The notes beneath the pieces are model-generated. The model was not told where the DNA came from and made no database searches. It saw only the letters and a list, made by a program, of their open reading frames with translations. Position numbers and translations under genes: made by a program. A DNA stretch of 63,473 bases, filler included, from Hyphochytrium catenoides (lineage: Eukaryota > Protista > Hyphochytriomycota): assembly GCA_900088475.1 (NCBI GenBank). It is 9 parts of 9 records of this genome, joined end to end, with 100 filler letters (N's around TTAATTAATTAA, not from the genome) between each part and the next. Parts side by side here need not be neighbours in the genome. Positions count along the whole stretch, not along the records: positions 34,193 to 39,980 come from FLMG01003718.1; 8 more parts are not named here. One strand, written 5' to 3'. Below, piece by piece: positions 34,068-42,070 of the stretch (the first letter of the stretch is position 1; each line of letters begins with the position of its first letter).

Positions 34068-34812
34068 GAGGTAGACCGTGAGGAAGAGAGAANNNNNNNN
34101 NNNNNNNNNNNNNNNNNNNNNNNNNNNNNNNNNNNNTTAATTAATTAANNNNNNNNNNNNNNNNNNNNNNNNNNNNNNNNNNNNNNNNNNNNTACATAGT
34201 TCTAGGTGCCAAAATGTTTTTTACTGGAACACCTTGCTCCTCCGCGCTCTGCCTGCCGCTGGCCTGACTGTTATAGTGTATAAGTACAAGTAGCAGCTTT
34301 GACCTGTAGAAAGGGAGGACGGAGGAAGGCGTTATTACCGGAATAACGTATGCTAATCTACCTCGTATTTTGGATACTGAGCTATTTTATGCTGGTTAAG
34401 GGTCAGGATGGACTTCAGAACCGCCAGAAGCCGCCGCACAGACTCCACAGCAGACAGGACAGGATCTGCTCTGCGGCTTGTGTCCTTGTGTCAACTCTGC
34501 TCTCCAGGCAATCCGCAGCAGGGACAGATGATGACTGAGAGCCGTCCATCAGAGCAAGCTCCTCTAGTTCTATCTATGTCCTCTTCGTCGTGTTAGCCAG
34601 CAGGGGCTAAGCTTCTTTCTCAAGTAGTGATGAGTAGACGAAGCACTAGTCCTCCTCTGCTGTCAAGCCCGCCGCCTTTCATGCTACTTCGTCAGCACTT
34701 GCCTCTATGGCTTTCTGAAGAGAGACATAGTTGATGAAGGAGGAGTGACCTCTTTGTAACCCATCAAGATCTTCAGGAGGAGTGCCAAAGAGTGACCCTC
34801 CTCAGATTCACA

Positions 34813-36792
34813 ATGGCCAGGGTCAGTGTGAATGCACGCCTTAGTGTGATGGCTGGATGTCAAGCGTACTACTACGGGGGTTGGACTAAGGCGAGCAGTA
34901 GTAGGTTGACATCACAAGCTTTCAGGAGGTCCCTCACCATCAGAGCGTCCAATGAGCTCATGAGCTCCTTGGCGTGTAGCTCTATCAGAAGGCGAGACAG
35001 AGGCCAAGGGCTGAGCCCATCGAGAGGTTACCACCAGCGCAGAGTCACCTCGAAGTCTCTTCTTAGTAGAGAGAAAGCAGGCGCCAATCCTTCTGCTTCT
35101 CTTCTGCAGCGTACAGGGAATAAGTCGGCTGCTGATGGGAGTCAGTTACGTTCGGTCGTGGCCCTTACTCAATTGATTGCTAAGTATGGCGCTAGGGGGA
35201 ACCTTCGGGCCCTTGAGGACGTGCTGTACAAGCGCATGCCGAAGTCTGGCGTGAAGCCCAATGCGATCACCTGCTCTGAGGTGCTGAAGGCGTATATCAA
35301 GGCTGGACAGCTCCAAAAGGCAGAGTTGTTTCTGCGCGAGAGCATGCCATCGCTAGGAGTGAAGCCAGCTGTTATTCACTTCACTCTGCTCCTAGGAGGC
35401 TATGGTTCTACGGGTAACTGGCAGGCAATGGAGGAGATCCTGTACAAGCGCGTGCCTGAGGCTGGCGTGAAGCCCAATGCGATCACTTGCTCTGAGGTTC
35501 TGAAGGCGTACATCAAGACTGGACAGGTCAAAAAGGCAGAGATGTTTGTGCGTGAGGGCATGCCATCGCTAGGACTGAAGCCAATTGGTATTCACTTCAC
35601 TCTGCTCCTGGGAGGCTCTGGATCTATGGGTAACTTGCAGACAATGGAGGAGATTTTGTACCATCGCATGCCTGAGGCTGGCGTCAAGCCTGATGAGATA
35701 ACCTGCTCTGAGGTTCTGAAGGCTTACATCAAGGCAGGACAGCTCAAAAAGGCAGATATGTTTCTGCGTGAGGGCATGCCGTCGCTCGGAATGAAGCCAA
35801 CTGCTATTCACTTCAATCTGCTCCTGGGAGGCTATGGGTCTATGGCTCAGTTGCAGACAATGGGTGAGATCCTGTACAAGCGTATGCCTGAGGCTGGCGT
35901 GAAGCCTGATGAGGTCAGCTGCGCTGAGGTACTGAAGGCGTACATCAAGGCTGGAGAGTTAGACAAGGCAGAGATCTTTCTGCGTGGGGGCATACAGTCC
36001 ATAGGATTGAAGCCAACTGATATTCACTTCAACCTGCTCCTGGGAGGCTATGGGTCTATGGGTCAGTTTCAGACGGCGGAGGAGCTCCTGTACAAGCGTA
36101 TGCCTGAGGCTGGCGTGAAGCCTGATGAGATCACTTGCGCTGAGGTGCTGAAGGCGTACATCAAGGCTGGTGAGCTGGAAAAGGCACAAATGTTTTTGCG
36201 TGAGAGCATACAGTCGCTAGGAGTGAAGCCAACTGACATTCACTTTACTCTGCTCCTGGGAGGCTATGGATCTATTGGTAACTGGCAGGCAATGGAGGAG
36301 ATTTTATTCGGGCGCATGCCTGAGGCTGGCGTGAAGCCTGATGAGATCACCTGCACTGAGGTGCTGAAGGCGTACATCAAGGCAGGAGAGCTGGAAAAGG
36401 CATCAACGTTTCTGCGTTGGGGCATACCATCGATAGGTGTTAAGCGAACTGTTAACCAGTTCAACCTGCTCCTGGAAGGCTATGGATCTATGGGTGACTT
36501 GCAGGCAGCGGAGGAGATTCTGTACAAGGCCATGCCTGAGGCTAGCTTGAAGCCCAATGAGATCAGCTGCGCTGAGGTTCTGAAGGCGTACATCAAGGCT
36601 GGAGAGCTGGAAAAGGCATCAACGTTTCTGCTTGAGGGCATATCGTCGCTAGGAGTGAAGCCAACTGATATTCACTTCAACCTGCTTCTGGAAGGCTATG
36701 GGTCTATGGCTCAGTTGCAGGCAGTGGAGGAGATCCTGTGCAAGCGCATATCTGAGGCTGGTCTGAAGGATTCACCTGCGCTGGGATTTTGA
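34813..36792 (+). CDS. PPR protein with alternating 36-aa motifs and an organelle-targeting-like N-terminus; last motifs frameshifted
   Basis: Arg/Ser-rich, acid-poor N-terminus. Helical repeats xITCSEVLKAYIKAG...GVKPx alternate with xIHF[TN]LLLGGYGSMG...AGVKP[DN]. Repeat homology continues out of frame to a TAA ending at 36923. Confidence 0.88.
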   Translation: MARVSVNARLSVMAGCQAYYYGGWTKASSSRLTSQAFRRSLTIRASNELMSSLACSSIRRRDRGQGLSPSRGYHQRRVTSKSLLSREKAGANPSASLLQRTGNKSAADGSQLRSVVALTQLIAKYGARGNLRALEDVLYKRMPKSGVKPNAITCSEVLKAYIKAGQLQKAELFLRESMPSLGVKPAVIHFTLLLGGYGSTGNWQAMEEILYKRVPEAGVKPNAITCSEVLKAYIKTGQVKKAEMFVREGMPSLGLKPIGIHFTLLLGGSGSMGNLQTMEEILYHRMPEAGVKPDEITCSEVLKAYIKAGQLKKADMFLREGMPSLGMKPTAIHFNLLLGGYGSMAQLQTMGEILYKRMPEAGVKPDEVSCAEVLKAYIKAGELDKAEIFLRGGIQSIGLKPTDIHFNLLLGGYGSMGQFQTAEELLYKRMPEAGVKPDEITCAEVLKAYIKAGELEKAQMFLRESIQSLGVKPTDIHFTLLLGGYGSIGNWQAMEEILFGRMPEAGVKPDEITCTEVLKAYIKAGELEKASTFLRWGIPSIGVKRTVNQFNLLLEGYGSMGDLQAAEEILYKAMPEASLKPNEISCAEVLKAYIKAGELEKASTFLLEGISSLGVKPTDIHFNLLLEGYGSMAQLQAVEEILCKRISEAGLKDSPALGF

Positions 36793-36890
36793 AGGCGTAC
36801 ATCAGAGCTGGAGAGCTCCAGAAGGCAAAGGTACTTCTGCGTGAAGAGATACCGTCACTAAGAGTGAATCTGGACGGTGATCGCTATCGG
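35155..36890 (+). repeat. 216-bp coding tandem repeat, about 8 units
   Basis: For example GCTGGCGTGAAGCCCAAT at 35461 and GCTGGCGTCAAGCCTGAT at 35677 give a period of 216. High nucleotide identity is visible between units. Confidence 0.95.
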
Positions 36891-39681
36891 ATGCTCATAA
36901 ATAGCTATCGCTCTTGCAAGTAATGCCGCTTCACTTTGTCGATGGCGCTATATCCCCTGACAGCTGTGCTGGCTCGTGCACTTGGATGAGGATGTCAGGT
37001 GGTTGCAGATCTCTGGCAGTAACGATAGGCGCAGGAGCTTGATGAGTAGCTGTGTATATAGTTTCATATAGCTCTCCGTGTCTTCGATATTTAAGGCAGG
37101 TAAGCACCTCCTTTCTCTGATAGTTGTGGATCGAAGGACAGCTCGCATGTGGGAACATTTGTCACGCCTTAATGTACACTTGTTCAAATGCAAGAGCGGA
37201 TATCCCTTCACAACGTTCATTAGAGCTTGAGACGGAAAGTCTCTTAAAAAAACATCTGGAGATGAAGACTCTCTTACTTCCATGCAGCGCAGTTGACTTT
37301 GCTTGCTCTGTTTCTATAGGGGTTTGGCCACCCCTGAGAGGTGAACGTAGTGGACTGGTGATGAGGAATGCTAGGGCCGCATCACCCTAAGCAGAAAGTT
37401 CGATAAGCTTTTAGCGTACTCAGCCAGTGAACAGAGGAACCAACTAGGCCGAGGAGTATGGCCCTAGGAGGTGGTACAGTCTTTCTTTGAGGGGCGACAC
37501 CGTCTTAAGAGGGTATGGTTTGAGCTTTGCAACAGAGGCTGTTTCATCTCGCCAAGCGTACAGAATGGCCTCTCTCGAGACCCTTCTATAACTATGGCGG
37601 TGACCTAAGGAGGTCGAGGCTTCGTAGTCTTCTACCAAGACGAGCTTGTCACCATCTCGCCTCCCTTACAAGCCGGATGATGGAGAGAACTAGGGACACA
37701 ATTTGGTGCTAGAGTGGTGAAGGGGATAATTTTATAAGGGAAACAAACTTAAAAGCCCAGTGGGACACCACCAGACGGATGTGGAGAGCCAGGAGCAAAT
37801 AAAGGTCTGCCCTGTGCGCCCGTTCACTTACTACTAGGACCAGCAGAAAGAGCGGGGAGAAACCTCGCGCCTTAACTTCAGAGGAAGAAGGCACCCCGGA
37901 GGTTATTAAGCCGTCTGCCTGCGACTAGTAAGAGCAGTGAGCACCCGTCCTTCTTATATAGTTATACTTAGTCTCGATGGTACTGTCCTCTGATCGGCGA
38001 GCTCATTTGTCGGTCTTTATGGCCACCACCACCTTAAGGCTAACCTCTGAAAGGAAGAGGAACGTGTGGTCATTAAGGTGCAGGAAGAGTGGGCTGGAAC
38101 TTGATAGTAGATTAGCATAGGCACGAACTCATTTGTCCTTAGAAGGGGCCTCTGTATGTACGTCCTAGTAGGAGGAACTAATGATGCTAACATTGGCTAA
38201 CAGGAAGCTCCGACTCTGGACTACCTTCAAGCTGCAACAACGTAAGGCGCTACTGGCGGAAGAAAGGCATCGCTTCTACAACGTAAGACGTTTCGAGACC
38301 AAGAAGAATTAGGAGGGTAGAGGTACGTTATTTATAGGATCATAGAGAGCTTTACTGGCGGCAATAGGGCTGACCTCACACATTCTCACATCCGTTCGGT
38401 CGCCTCCGCTTTTGTCGCCTTGGCAACCATCTGGAGGAGCGGCAAACAAAAAGAAAGGAAGGTGCGCAGTTGAGCTGACCGAGAAAGTGCTGCATAATAA
38501 TCAACGGCCCGCCCGCCCACTCAGGCGCTGGTGTTGGACCTAGTAAGATATAGGTAGCTAGCTGGCTCAGTGTTCAGCTCGTAGACAGTAGTGTCGCTAC
38601 TACGTAGGCGGGCGAAGGAGGATGGATAAAGCTTGTCGTTCAGCTCTTCATTAGCTTCTATGTTTGTGTAGAAGAGGGCTACCCACCTCCAGCCTGAACC
38701 AGCCAGGCGATGAAGTGAGCTCCCAGGCCAGTCATACTGTCAACAAGCGTTATCCTTGTGAGCCCCGCCAGCCCCAGGCTTATATCTCCTCGACGTTGCC
38801 ACGATGATATCCGGTCGAGGCCGAAGAAGTACATTGTTGTCCTCTTTCCGAACACAATCCAGTCACTGTAAGGACGAAAGCTGCCAGTTGGTAGTTCCTG
38901 ATAGCGGCTCTGTCTGCTTCTTGCTCTAAGGTCTCTCCTTCTGCAGAAGCTGTCATATTATTGAGGAATCGATCGTCGTCTGATGAACAGAAGTTGACCG
39001 ACAATCAACAGTTGTGTCCTCTGTGTGATATTGAGAAGAGGCCCTGCCATCACTCTATGCGCCCTAAGTAGTGGACTGAGCAAGGAAGGAGTGCTGCTGT
39101 CATTCAACTTCGACATGCAATGGGCTCGTGTGACAAGGTGTCCCTATGACCAAGCCTAGGACGCTGCAGAAGTACTAGAAGTTACGGCTGACGTTCGGAC
39201 GCTGTACTGAGGTTTCTCTCGCACTGTCTCTGCACTAGACCGTGCTGGTCTTCCGCGTTGTTAGGCTTTGCAGATGGAGGTTCTGATGGCGCTCTGAACT
39301 TCTTCGCTGGACAAGGACCGAGGATCCTGAAAGCTTTTCTTCCTTCGGTGTCTCTTCGTCTTTCTTCTCTTGTAAAGGGTATAGGAAGTAGTTCAGTAGT
39401 GACAGCGAGTAAGTTAGCGACTTTAGTCGTTTAGCTAGTTAGCTCTTCTAGAAGAATCATTAGACAGGAGCTTGATGCGCACTGGGTCAGTTAGGGTTAA
39501 GGGTTAGGGTGAGCACTACTCTCCTACGCAGAGCACAAGTCCAACACTACTACCTCTCAACGAGCACTCAGCTAAATATATAAGCAATACCTCCTACTAC
39601 TACTCCGGCAGCGAGAGAGAGAAAAAGAGAGAGAGAGAGAGAGAGANNNNNNNNNNNNNNNNNNNNNNNNNNNNNNNNNNN

Positions 39682-39713
<32 letters not shown>

Positions 39714-39760
39714 AGGGAAGCCTAGAAACGTACGAAATAGATGGGGGAGAACCGTTTTAC

Positions 39761-39946
39761 CTGTACCTTGCCATGAAGCCGTTACTGGCTATTGACGTCG
39801 ATACCGATTCCTGATGAGATTCTTGACATAAGGAATAGGTGACCCCTCAATCATCCGTTACATTTCTCTTCCTCTCGCTCCTTCTGCACTCAACGGAGAC
39901 TCGGGGAGAAGGTTTATCTTTATGTTGGGCAGGCAATGAAGGAAGG
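39761..39946 (-). pseudogene. exon-like relic with two in-frame stops
   Basis: AG/GT-bounded segment between microsatellite tracts: FLHCLPNIKINLLPESPLSAEGARGREM*RMIEGSPIPYVKNLIRNRYRRQ*PVTASWQG. Confidence 0.4.
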
Positions 39947-42070
39947 CTATGAAGAGTGATAAGAGAGGAGAGAGAGAGAGNNNNNNNNNNNNNNNNNNNN
40001 NNNNNNNNNNNNNNNNNNNNNNNNTTAATTAATTAANNNNNNNNNNNNNNNNNNNNNNNNNNNNNNNNNNNNNNNNNNNNCTCTCTCTCTCTCTCACACA
40101 CACACCTTCTTCCTCCTTCTCACTCTCTCTGTCTCTCTCTCTCTCACACACACTTTGTCTCTCTCCTGCCATCCCATCCCTTCCACTCTTCGCTACCCCT
40201 TAACCTCTACGCCTATCTCACCCACGCGGTTGACTCGCGCTGGTGAGACACAAACCTCGGGAGCGGATAATCTACTCGCCCACCAGAGTAGAACTACTGA
40301 TGTGCCAGAAGAAGCGAGTGCTATGCGAGAGAGGAGCCAAGGTGTCTCCCCCTTTGGTCAATGGGAGGAGGATCTTCCTGTGATGATGTGTGTGCCACAT
40401 CTCCCCACAGGCGCCGGGTAGCGTTGAAGATCCTCTCTTCCTATAGTCGACAGCACCCAAAAGCCCTCCCTTTCCTCTCTCTTGCGTTTGTCTCTCGCTT
40501 GCTCACTCTCTCACACTCTTTCGTACTCTCTGTCTCTCATACACTCTTTCTCTCTCTCTTCCTCACTCACTCACTCTCTCTCTCTCTCTCTCTCTCACAC
40601 ACTCGGTCCTTTAGCTTCGCTGTACAGGTACAAATGCTACTTTACAAGTCCGTAAATAGGTTAATTTGAAGACCTTAGTTCTAGATTTTAACATAGTGCG
40701 TTAACTGCTCACCTGATAAAATAAAAAGCGCTAAAAGCGGAGTTCGTGGTGTACTGTTTTAAGTGGTGGAACTAGTGCGTGCCTTGCGAGAGAGAGAGGC
40801 GCTCACCTTGGACTCTCTCTCTCTCTCTCTCTCTCACTCTCTCTCTCTCTCTCTCTCTCCTTCTGACTACCCGTCATTTTCTCACCATCACTGTCTCACT
40901 CTCTGTCTCCCTCTCGCCTCTCCTCTATGTCGCCTCTCCTCTATGTGTCCTTCTCCGGTCTGTCTCTCTCTCCTCTTTGTATCTCTCGTCTGTTTTTATT
41001 CATAGTCTTCCCACTGTTCTTATGACACGTTCCCCGTGTTCTCTTTCTACCTGAAGGAGCCTATTTCTCTTATAGAAATAGCTCGAGTTCGTCCTGCGTG
41101 TCTAAAGCGAGAGAAAGAGAAAGAGACAGAGAGAGAAAGAGACAGAGACAGAGAAAGAGACAGAGCCTGTAGGGGGTGCCGTAAGGAAAGAACGACAAAG
41201 AATAAGAGAGAAACAGGAGAAAAAGAGAGAGACAGACAGAGAAGAAGAAAAGAGAGAGAGTGGGAGAGATTGAAGTGAACTAATAGTTGTAAGGGTGGCC
41301 TCCTGATTCCCGGCCTACGAGAGGAGAATCATCTCTTTCCTCTTTTTTCCCTCTCTCTCTCTGTGTCTCTGTCTCTCTCTCGCTTTCCTCTGCTCTCTCT
41401 CTCCTCCAGACTTCCTCTCTCTTCTTATGGCTGCCTCTCCCACGAGACAGGCAAACCGATAGGGCAGGAGAGAGATGGAACGGAGCAATTTTGACGTCAT
41501 GGGACGATATTATGGCCAACACGCCATGGGGACAAAGAGAGCGCTGAATAAAGGAAGGCAGAAAAGGAAGAAGAGGCGTAGCCTGAGACTAAGACCTGCT
41601 TCTGTGTGTATAAGAGAGAGANNNNNNNNNNNNNNNNNNNNNNNNNNNNNNGAGAGAGAGAGAGAGAGAAAGAGAGAGGCGCGCGATGGGTTTCTAGGTA
41701 AAAAGCCCATTTGGTGTTTCCTGGAGGATAAGGGATAAGGGTAGATCCTCCTCTTTATTAAGTCGCTCGCTTCCCTGTCAACTCTCTGTCTCACACTCAC
41801 GCTGCTCGCCCCCCAATGCATTCACTGACTGGGATCTTTCACGATTGCTCTCTCTCTCTCTCTCGACATAAAATAGGATTATCAGGTGTCTAATCTCTAA
41901 ATTGTCTCTCCTTGTCCCTCTGTGCCTTCATCGCTGTCTCTCTCTTTCTTCTTTCTTGTCTCTCTTTCTCTCTCTCTCGCTCACGCACATTAGGGTTCTC
42001 TATGGCTCCTCTCTCTCTCTCTCTCTCTGGCTCTCTCTCTCTCTCTCTCTCTCTCTCTGGCTCTGGCTCT

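Follow-up and report, generated by a model that had tools for sequence, protein, structure and literature searches.

A predicted P-class pentatricopeptide repeat gene with a tandem two-motif unit in Hyphochytrium catenoides

When a pentatricopeptide repeat (PPR) array alternates strictly between two types of motif, and only every second motif carries residue pairs of the classical RNA code, do the intervening motifs read RNA as well, or does the protein follow a rule of its own? The question is raised by a gene of Hyphochytrium catenoides (Hyphochytriomycota; assembly GCA_900088475.1) that lies in a stretch of DNA of 63,473 nucleotides, here called the window, within the piece at positions 34193-39980 (5.8 kb; record FLMG01003718.1) to which the analysis was applied; all positions count along the window. 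An original prediction, made from the sequence alone, had described the array as recently amplified and similar to that of transcription activator-like (TAL) effectors, with one motif type (B) reading bases and the other (A) acting as a spacer or using an undescribed code. The reading that we favour, at a probability of roughly 0.7, is that of a nuclear eukaryotic gene for a P-class PPR protein, the array of which would have grown by intragenic two-motif duplication and the product of which would bind single-stranded organellar RNA. What is unusual here is a uniform 36-residue, two-type layout within an otherwise known P-class PPR family, in what is a fairly ordinary gene.

The gene and the family of its product

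The piece contains a single long open reading frame (ORF) on the plus strand, at 34792-36792 and of 666 codons, which as listed begins at an in-frame GTG (34792); counted from the first ATG, the PPR coding sequence occupies 34813-36792 (plus strand, 659 residues) and ends with the stop codon TGA at 36790-36792. Since every other ORF in the piece is of 111 residues or fewer, the chance occurrence of a 2-kb ORF at this place is negligible. The N-terminal region outside the repeats (34813-35154, plus strand) comprises 114 residues, among them 20 Arg and Lys, 4 Asp and Glu, 27 Ser and Thr, and 13 Ala; this composition, basic, hydroxylated and with few acidic residues, suggests a resemblance to an organellar presequence.

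Searches of Pfam under the curated cut-offs (the PPR family belongs to clan TPR; PF01535, PF13041, PF13812) yielded PPR_3 (1.3e-48, 163 bits; cut-off 25), PPR_2 (1.2e-43, 147 bits; cut-off 30), PPR (3.2e-23, 81 bits; cut-off 25) and PPR_1 (74 bits), and no E, DYW, SMR or other accessory domain was found in the Pfam search of the protein. The highest-scoring PDB sequences in a phmmer search were dPPR-U10 (2e-66) and PPR10 of maize (3e-52), and in the alignment every motif of 36 residues is matched to a designer motif of 35, with one gap of a single residue that falls in helix b. A structure model, which the original prediction had proposed as a check, was computed from the single sequence with AlphaFold2 for residues 115-666 and gave a regular predicted PPR solenoid with a mean pLDDT (predicted local distance difference test score) of 84 and 30 helices, corresponding to 15 hairpins. 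The modelled lengths of helix a, turn, helix b and loop are 13/3/14/6 in A motifs and 14/2/14/6 in B motifs, adding up to 36 in both. The best Foldseek matches of this model were pTAC2/PAP2, dPPR-U10 with RNA and PPR10 with RNA, all at a probability of 1.00.

The absence of S motifs and of an E, E+ or DYW C-terminal domain places the protein in the P class, although the motif length is 36 and not the canonical 35. The first helix of the A motif (xITxxEVLKA) prompted us to consider an L-type motif, as found in PLS-class proteins. Against hidden Markov models (HMMs) of P1, L1 and S1 motifs, made from 50 PLS triplets of retrieved proteins, the B motifs scored 8-22 bits with P1 (the truncated last B motif excepted), whereas the A motifs scored at most 6.9 bits with all three models and 0.9-5.0 bits with L1, no better than with P1 or S1; given these low scores, the A motifs, though ambiguous in this comparison, are classified from their sequence as divergent P-type motifs and not as L motifs. 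A PLS-class protein is likewise ruled out by the period, which is 72 (36+36) and not 101-102. The helical-repeat families OPR and HPR have periods of 38 and 37 residues, respectively; the repeat here has a period of exactly 36/72, and PPR profiles score best. Pfam, PDB sequence matches, the AlphaFold2 model and Foldseek thus agree on a predicted P-class PPR solenoid, and the array is a PPR array, as had been supposed.

Repeat anatomy, variation among units and the 3' end

Tandem Repeats Finder detected a 216-bp unit in 7.6 copies at 35224-36868, with 83% matches and 0% indels. When the translation was sliced into 36-residue blocks from residue 122 of the ORF (nucleotide 35155), 15 in-frame motifs were obtained that alternate strictly between B and A, which agrees with the layout originally described. 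The array opens with a diverged B-type motif (motif 0, 35155-35262, plus strand; pair TN), which lies mostly outside the homogeneous part and shares 53-67% DNA identity with the other B motifs; it is followed by seven complete 216-bp (72-residue) units, each consisting of an A motif and a B motif (35263-36774, plus strand), which are 78-87% identical in DNA and 58-81% identical in protein. The first helix of B motifs reads xIHF(T/N)LLLGGYGS and the motif ends in MPEAGVKP(D/N), whereas in A motifs the helix reads xITC(S/A/T)EVLKAYIKAG and the end is SLGVKPT. Autocorrelation of the protein sequence peaks at lag 72 (0.59; 0.23 at lag 36), and identity between A and B motifs is only about 27%; the duplicated unit is therefore the pair of motifs and not the single motif. 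In the unit alignment (A1) 29 of 72 columns are invariant, and these are structural positions. Helix b accommodates the residue by which each motif exceeds the canonical 35, at a point after the conserved Ala20 and before the Met that leads into the loop. The residue pairs at the fifth and last positions are TN, TN, TD, ND, ND, TD, NN and N-S in the eight in-frame B motifs, and SA, SI, ST, AT, AT, TT and AT in the seven in-frame A motifs.

The remaining 43 of the 72 positions vary across the units. The Nei-Gojobori averages between units, likewise proposed as a check, are 0.17 for dN and 0.31 for dS, with a ratio of 0.56, from which the amplification appears not to be very recent and the constraint moderate. 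"Recently amplified" is thus apt in a relative sense: the units are still much alike in DNA, but have accumulated a dS of about 0.31. A ratio below 1, together with the intact 2-kb ORF, counts in favour of a functional PPR gene.

The four code positions of the unit (the fifth and last residues of both motifs) have a mean entropy of 1.24 bits, compared with 0.60 bits over all sites (permutation p=0.016); measured against the 43 variable sites alone, the excess has p=0.12. Fitch parsimony on a neighbour-joining tree of the units requires 79 amino-acid steps, of which 70 (89%) fall outside the four code sites and nine within them, an excess with p=0.04 relative to all sites and p=0.25 relative to the variable ones. 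Unit positions 18, 21, 22 and 37, in helix b and the turn, are more variable than any code position. The pN/pS ratio is 1.2 at the four code codons and 0.57 elsewhere, four codons being too small a sample to carry weight. All differences at code positions are single-nucleotide differences (TCT/GCT/ACT, GCT/ATT/ACT, ACT/AAT/AAC, AAT/GAT), and the code states of B motifs largely track the relatedness of the units; the two ND motifs are sister copies with 91% DNA identity. Change at code positions is roughly 2-fold enriched, then, and is not concentrated there in the manner of TAL effectors. A test of variability per site, suggested with the original prediction, accordingly comes out in its favour when all sites are the reference and not when variable sites are, and the likeness to TAL effectors has to be given up, considering the 58-81% protein identity between units, the 43 varying sites and the 70 of 79 steps that fall outside the code. 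The two motifs of one unit differ in their closest counterparts: for the A motif at 36127 this is the one at 36559 (0.89), for the B motif at 36235 the one at 35587 (0.88). This is a weak hint of mosaicism from unequal crossing-over or gene conversion.

At its 3' end the array is interrupted by a net deletion of 7 nucleotides relative to the other units, at 36767-36770 (about 36768, plus strand; unit alignment A2, gap columns 102-108). The gap deprives the final B motif of the last codons of its loop and changes the frame, so that the ORF terminates at 36792 and not at 36923. An intron was considered as the cause and ruled out, as the 7-nucleotide gap is clean within an otherwise colinear unit alignment. 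The out-of-frame remnant at 36771-36923 (plus strand) encodes a 16th, A-type motif (pair AD) and the first helix of a 17th, the Tandem Repeats Finder array reaching 36868; its frame is open over 50 codons, from 36771 to TAA at 36921-36923, and the gene probably once had its 3' end here. The original prediction, which placed the array at 35155-36923 with about 16 motifs, is correct as to the start, as to 15 motifs and as to all in-frame residue pairs, whereas its end point, its 16th motif (AD) and the Asp of its last B pair were read in the other frame, across the deletion.

The most probable of the alternatives, though itself unlikely, is that the gene belongs to a lineage-specific PPR family but is itself a pseudogene, in decay or disabled recently, with an array that diverges nearly neutrally. 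The frameshifting deletion removes the last 1.5 motifs, a dN/dS of 0.56 between units is on the high side for a protein under constraint, divergence is greatest in the last two units, and conserved orthologues were not found in the protein collection searched (about 15 billion sequences). However, the 666-codon ORF is intact upstream in a piece devoid of other long ORFs, the invariant columns lie at structural positions, and the truncated protein keeps 15 motifs. Moreover, the shifted frame is still open, so the deletion must be very recent or an assembly error within the repeat.

Reading of the RNA code

Under the favoured reading of a functional P-class binder, the array would have grown through intragenic tandem duplication of the 216-bp two-motif unit, with a probable contribution of unequal crossing-over or gene conversion. 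Behind a presequence-like N-terminus, 15 helix-hairpin motifs of 36 residues (originally 16-17) would adjoin one another and form a solenoid; this, we infer, binds single-stranded organellar RNA, each motif taking up one nucleotide and reading its base with residues 5 and 36. Like PPR10-type proteins, it would act at specific sites, as a stabiliser, a barrier to processing or an activator of translation.

The B motifs fit this reading directly: T or N occupies position 5 in 8/8 and N or D the last position in 7/8, and the classical seven code pairs are confined to them, so that the earlier observation of classical pairs on every second motif matches the tabulated pairs. For the A motifs an extended code is available from 62 residue pairs assayed by electrophoretic mobility shift in designer PPRs (Yan 2019, PMC6468296). 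There, the TT pair binds A with sharp bands, the ST pair is associated with A in smeared bands, the AD pair binds G strongly, and Ala, Cys and Gly at position 5 are purine determinants. By analogy with this extended code, the AT pair is plausibly a weak reader of A, and 4/8 of the A pairs would be read as purines (ST, TT, AD and, by the same analogy, AT). As ST, TT, AD and Ala5 already have purine preferences, neither a gapped target nor a new code is needed; as the A and B hairpins share their predicted geometry, there is no structural reason for RNA to skip alternate motifs. The description of A motifs as spacers or as carriers of an undescribed code is not upheld by these published preferences and the modelled geometry. 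Both motif types would instead take part under the classical and extended codes, with a predicted target of roughly A-?-A-?-G-A-U-(A)-U-(A)-G-A-Y-(A)-Y, the alternate positions of which would be purine- or A-rich and probably of low specificity.

Several points weigh against the favoured reading. SA, SI and AT have no measured specificity in the extended code, SA and SI being undescribed there altogether, and the code was calibrated on 35-residue P motifs of land plants and may not transfer to motifs of 36 residues. The closest structural match, pTAC2/PAP2, is a polymerase-associated PPR protein and not a simple RNA clamp. The deletion shortens the array and the gene could be decaying, and a dN/dS of 0.56 is fairly relaxed. 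The case for organelle targeting comes from the N-terminal composition, and the evidence for mosaicism amounts to a few nucleotides per 108-nucleotide motif.

Next in probability, and doubtful, is the model in which only the B motifs read bases, specifying the gapped target A-n-A-n-G-n-U-n-U-n-G-n-Y-n-U, while the A motifs are spacers or use a new code and the protein is a fast-evolving, recombination-reprogrammed binder comparable to restorer-of-fertility-like PPR proteins or TAL effectors. The restriction of classical pairs to B motifs is what this model would lead one to expect, and the last residues of the in-frame A motifs are Thr, Ala or Ile and never Asn or Asp, with SA, SI and AT outside the tested pairs. 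Motifs that obey the code poorly have a precedent in the L motifs of PLS proteins, but the A motifs here lack L-motif scores, have the same predicted hairpin geometry as the B motifs and in part carry pairs with described purine specificities. The roughly 2-fold enrichment of change at code positions (p=0.016 for entropy, p=0.04 for steps) and the elevated pN/pS also point towards this model; they are offset by the comparison with variable sites (p=0.12, 0.25), by the preponderance of off-code changes, by the small sample of codons and by the code states of the B motifs, which follow unit relatedness so that few events are needed.

A bolder version of the favoured reading, which we regard as quite improbable, takes the 36+36 unit for a lineage-specific PPR scaffold in a eukaryote other than a land plant, in which A motifs ending in Thr would provide a low-specificity or A-preferring "register", and in which duplication and shuffling of units, together with single-nucleotide switches (ACT/AAT, AAT/GAT) at the code codons of B motifs, would give new specificities; if true, it would be a natural modular reprogramming of a PPR protein. 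A structural or adaptor protein (a subunit of an organellar ribosome or polymerase complex) with protein or structured RNA as its binding partner and no linear code is very improbable: the match to pTAC2/PAP2 of the plastid RNA polymerase, the mitoribosomal rPPR proteins among the matches and the non-classical pairs on half of the motifs favour it, but the B motifs hold base-specifying pairs, the highest sequence similarity is to consensus designer PPRs that bind single-stranded RNA, recent unit amplification is unlikely in a protein fitting a fixed complex, and no SMR or other accessory domain is present.

Relatives, surroundings and comparison with known systems

In the collection of about 15 billion proteins, an exact look-up did not find the PPR protein and a word-index search found nothing above 27% identity, while an exhaustive HMMER search yielded 13,202 PPR matches, the best of which have 30-37% identity; no relative above 37% was found. 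Patterns derived from the unit gave matches in JGI metagenome and GTDB genome contigs, none of which was confirmed by tblastn. By these searches, the family of this 216-bp unit appears to be unsampled elsewhere. The named best matches are mixed (Selaginella, Marchantia, Diphasiastrum, angiosperms and one gammaproteobacterium), and PPR similarity at this level is a matter of closeness to the motif consensus and not of ancestry. The nearest clusters in the ESM Atlas lean to Chlorophyta and Haptophyta, which is a lead only.

Among the retrieved PPR proteins, periods of 31, 32, 34, 35, 36, 70-74, 85, 93 and 101-102 residues occur. Two-motif periodic arrays are represented by P0113 (72 residues) and P0132 of the diatom Grammatophora (74). 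P0170, an environmental eukaryote protein of 689 residues (ENA/JGI) encoded on five metagenome contigs (loci L001-L003), matches the unit HMM without gaps and in phase over 65 residues; close relatives of P0170 were looked for and not found. Because of its 36/72 periodicity and in-phase match, the 36+36 arrangement of A and B motifs may predate the amplification in the H. catenoides gene. The original prediction had named the existence of many known proteins with a 36/36 architecture as evidence that would speak against it; amplified multi-motif PPR units are indeed known, but just one distant protein with a 36/36 period, P0170, was found. Very recent multi-motif amplification is clearer in the DYW-type proteins P0002, P0004 and P0005 (ENA assemblies) and P0096, the nearly identical 101-residue PLS triplets of which (lag-101 self-identity 0.53-0.59) are more homogeneous than the units here.

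Other retrieved proteins and loci deserve mention in their own right. Parashewanella curva (Gammaproteobacteria) encodes P0080/P0250, of about 1300 residues (HMMER 7.5e-60, 32% identity), with an internal period of 85 residues and a self-identity of 0.48, i.e., a bacterial PPR-like array with amplified units. P0148 is a PPR-matching protein of 3173 residues with a 93-residue period and a self-identity of 0.72. The neighbourhood of P0170 at L001-L003 is compact and includes genes for Yippee, a protein kinase, a proteasome subunit, a WD40 protein and TRAM/LAG1.

Downstream of the gene, the approximately 3 kb at 36924-39980 contain no ORF above 111 residues at about 50% GC, and are apparently intergenic or intron-rich. 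No Rfam match was found in the piece, and the eight other ORFs of at least 60 residues in it gave no Pfam match. The ORFs on the minus strand within the array (35569-35811, 35959-36189 and 36264-36464) are regarded as by-products of the repeat. Microsatellites of the type (GA)n at 39613-39709 flank an assembly gap of 34 N at 39648-39681, and another lies at 39962-39980; the (GA)n tracts around the gap suggest a short-read eukaryotic nuclear scaffold in which assembly may have gone wrong at repeats, among them the PPR array. An interstitial TTAGGG-like run at 39482-39512 (GTTAGG in 3.3 copies and one extra base) may be a clue to the kind of telomere repeat in the source organism.

If expressed, the gene adds one more organellar RNA-binding PPR factor. 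As a natural array made wholly of 36-residue motifs, it could be used to test whether the 35-residue code is transferable, and it displays a di-motif amplification unit, in whose copies single-nucleotide steps have by now produced differences at code positions; the lack of relatives above 37% identity adds to its value. Current understanding is not overturned, since other retrieved PPR proteins vary in motif length, contain multi-motif units and show intragenic amplification.

With PPR10 (4m59) and dPPR-U10 (5i9f) the protein shares the contiguous helix-hairpin solenoid (here as modelled), the Pfam PPR match, the lack of a catalytic domain, classical code pairs (here on B motifs) and a presequence-like N-terminus. 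It differs in that every motif has 36 and not 35 residues, the extra one in helix b, in that two sequence types alternate in units of 78-87% DNA identity, and in that identity to any known protein is at most 37%. With the PLS-class editing factors (P1-L1-S1) it has in common a multi-motif unit, one motif type that follows the code poorly (there L), whole-unit intragenic amplification, and a B-to-A junction that resembles the P1-to-L1 junction (GVKPD/N, then xITxxxVLKA); unlike them, it has no S motif of 31-32 residues and no E or DYW domain, and its A motifs are not L motifs.

The RFL (restorer-of-fertility-like) PPR genes of flowering plants are P-class as well and evolve by duplication and recombination with some excess of change at code positions (cf. 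PMC2848758, PMC7380019). Their diversity, however, lies among clustered paralogous genes with 35-residue motifs, whereas here the similarity is among units inside one gene and the code-position excess is not significant against other variable sites (p=0.12 for entropy, p=0.25 for steps). TAL effectors are alike in their tandem repeats, a residue pair per base and unit similarity at the DNA level, but have a different fold and nucleic-acid target, and their repeats are near-identical except for the repeat-variable di-residue, whereas the units here are 58-81% identical with 89% of changes outside the specificity residues. P0170 shares the 36/72 periodicity, the loop signature hLxxxMPxxGhxP and an xAY-type helix in every second motif, and aligns to the PPR protein over about 340 residues with few gaps; identity is 24%, however, its own units are dissimilar (self-identity 0.12-0.13), and some of its motifs depart from the 36 residues that are uniform in H. 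catenoides.

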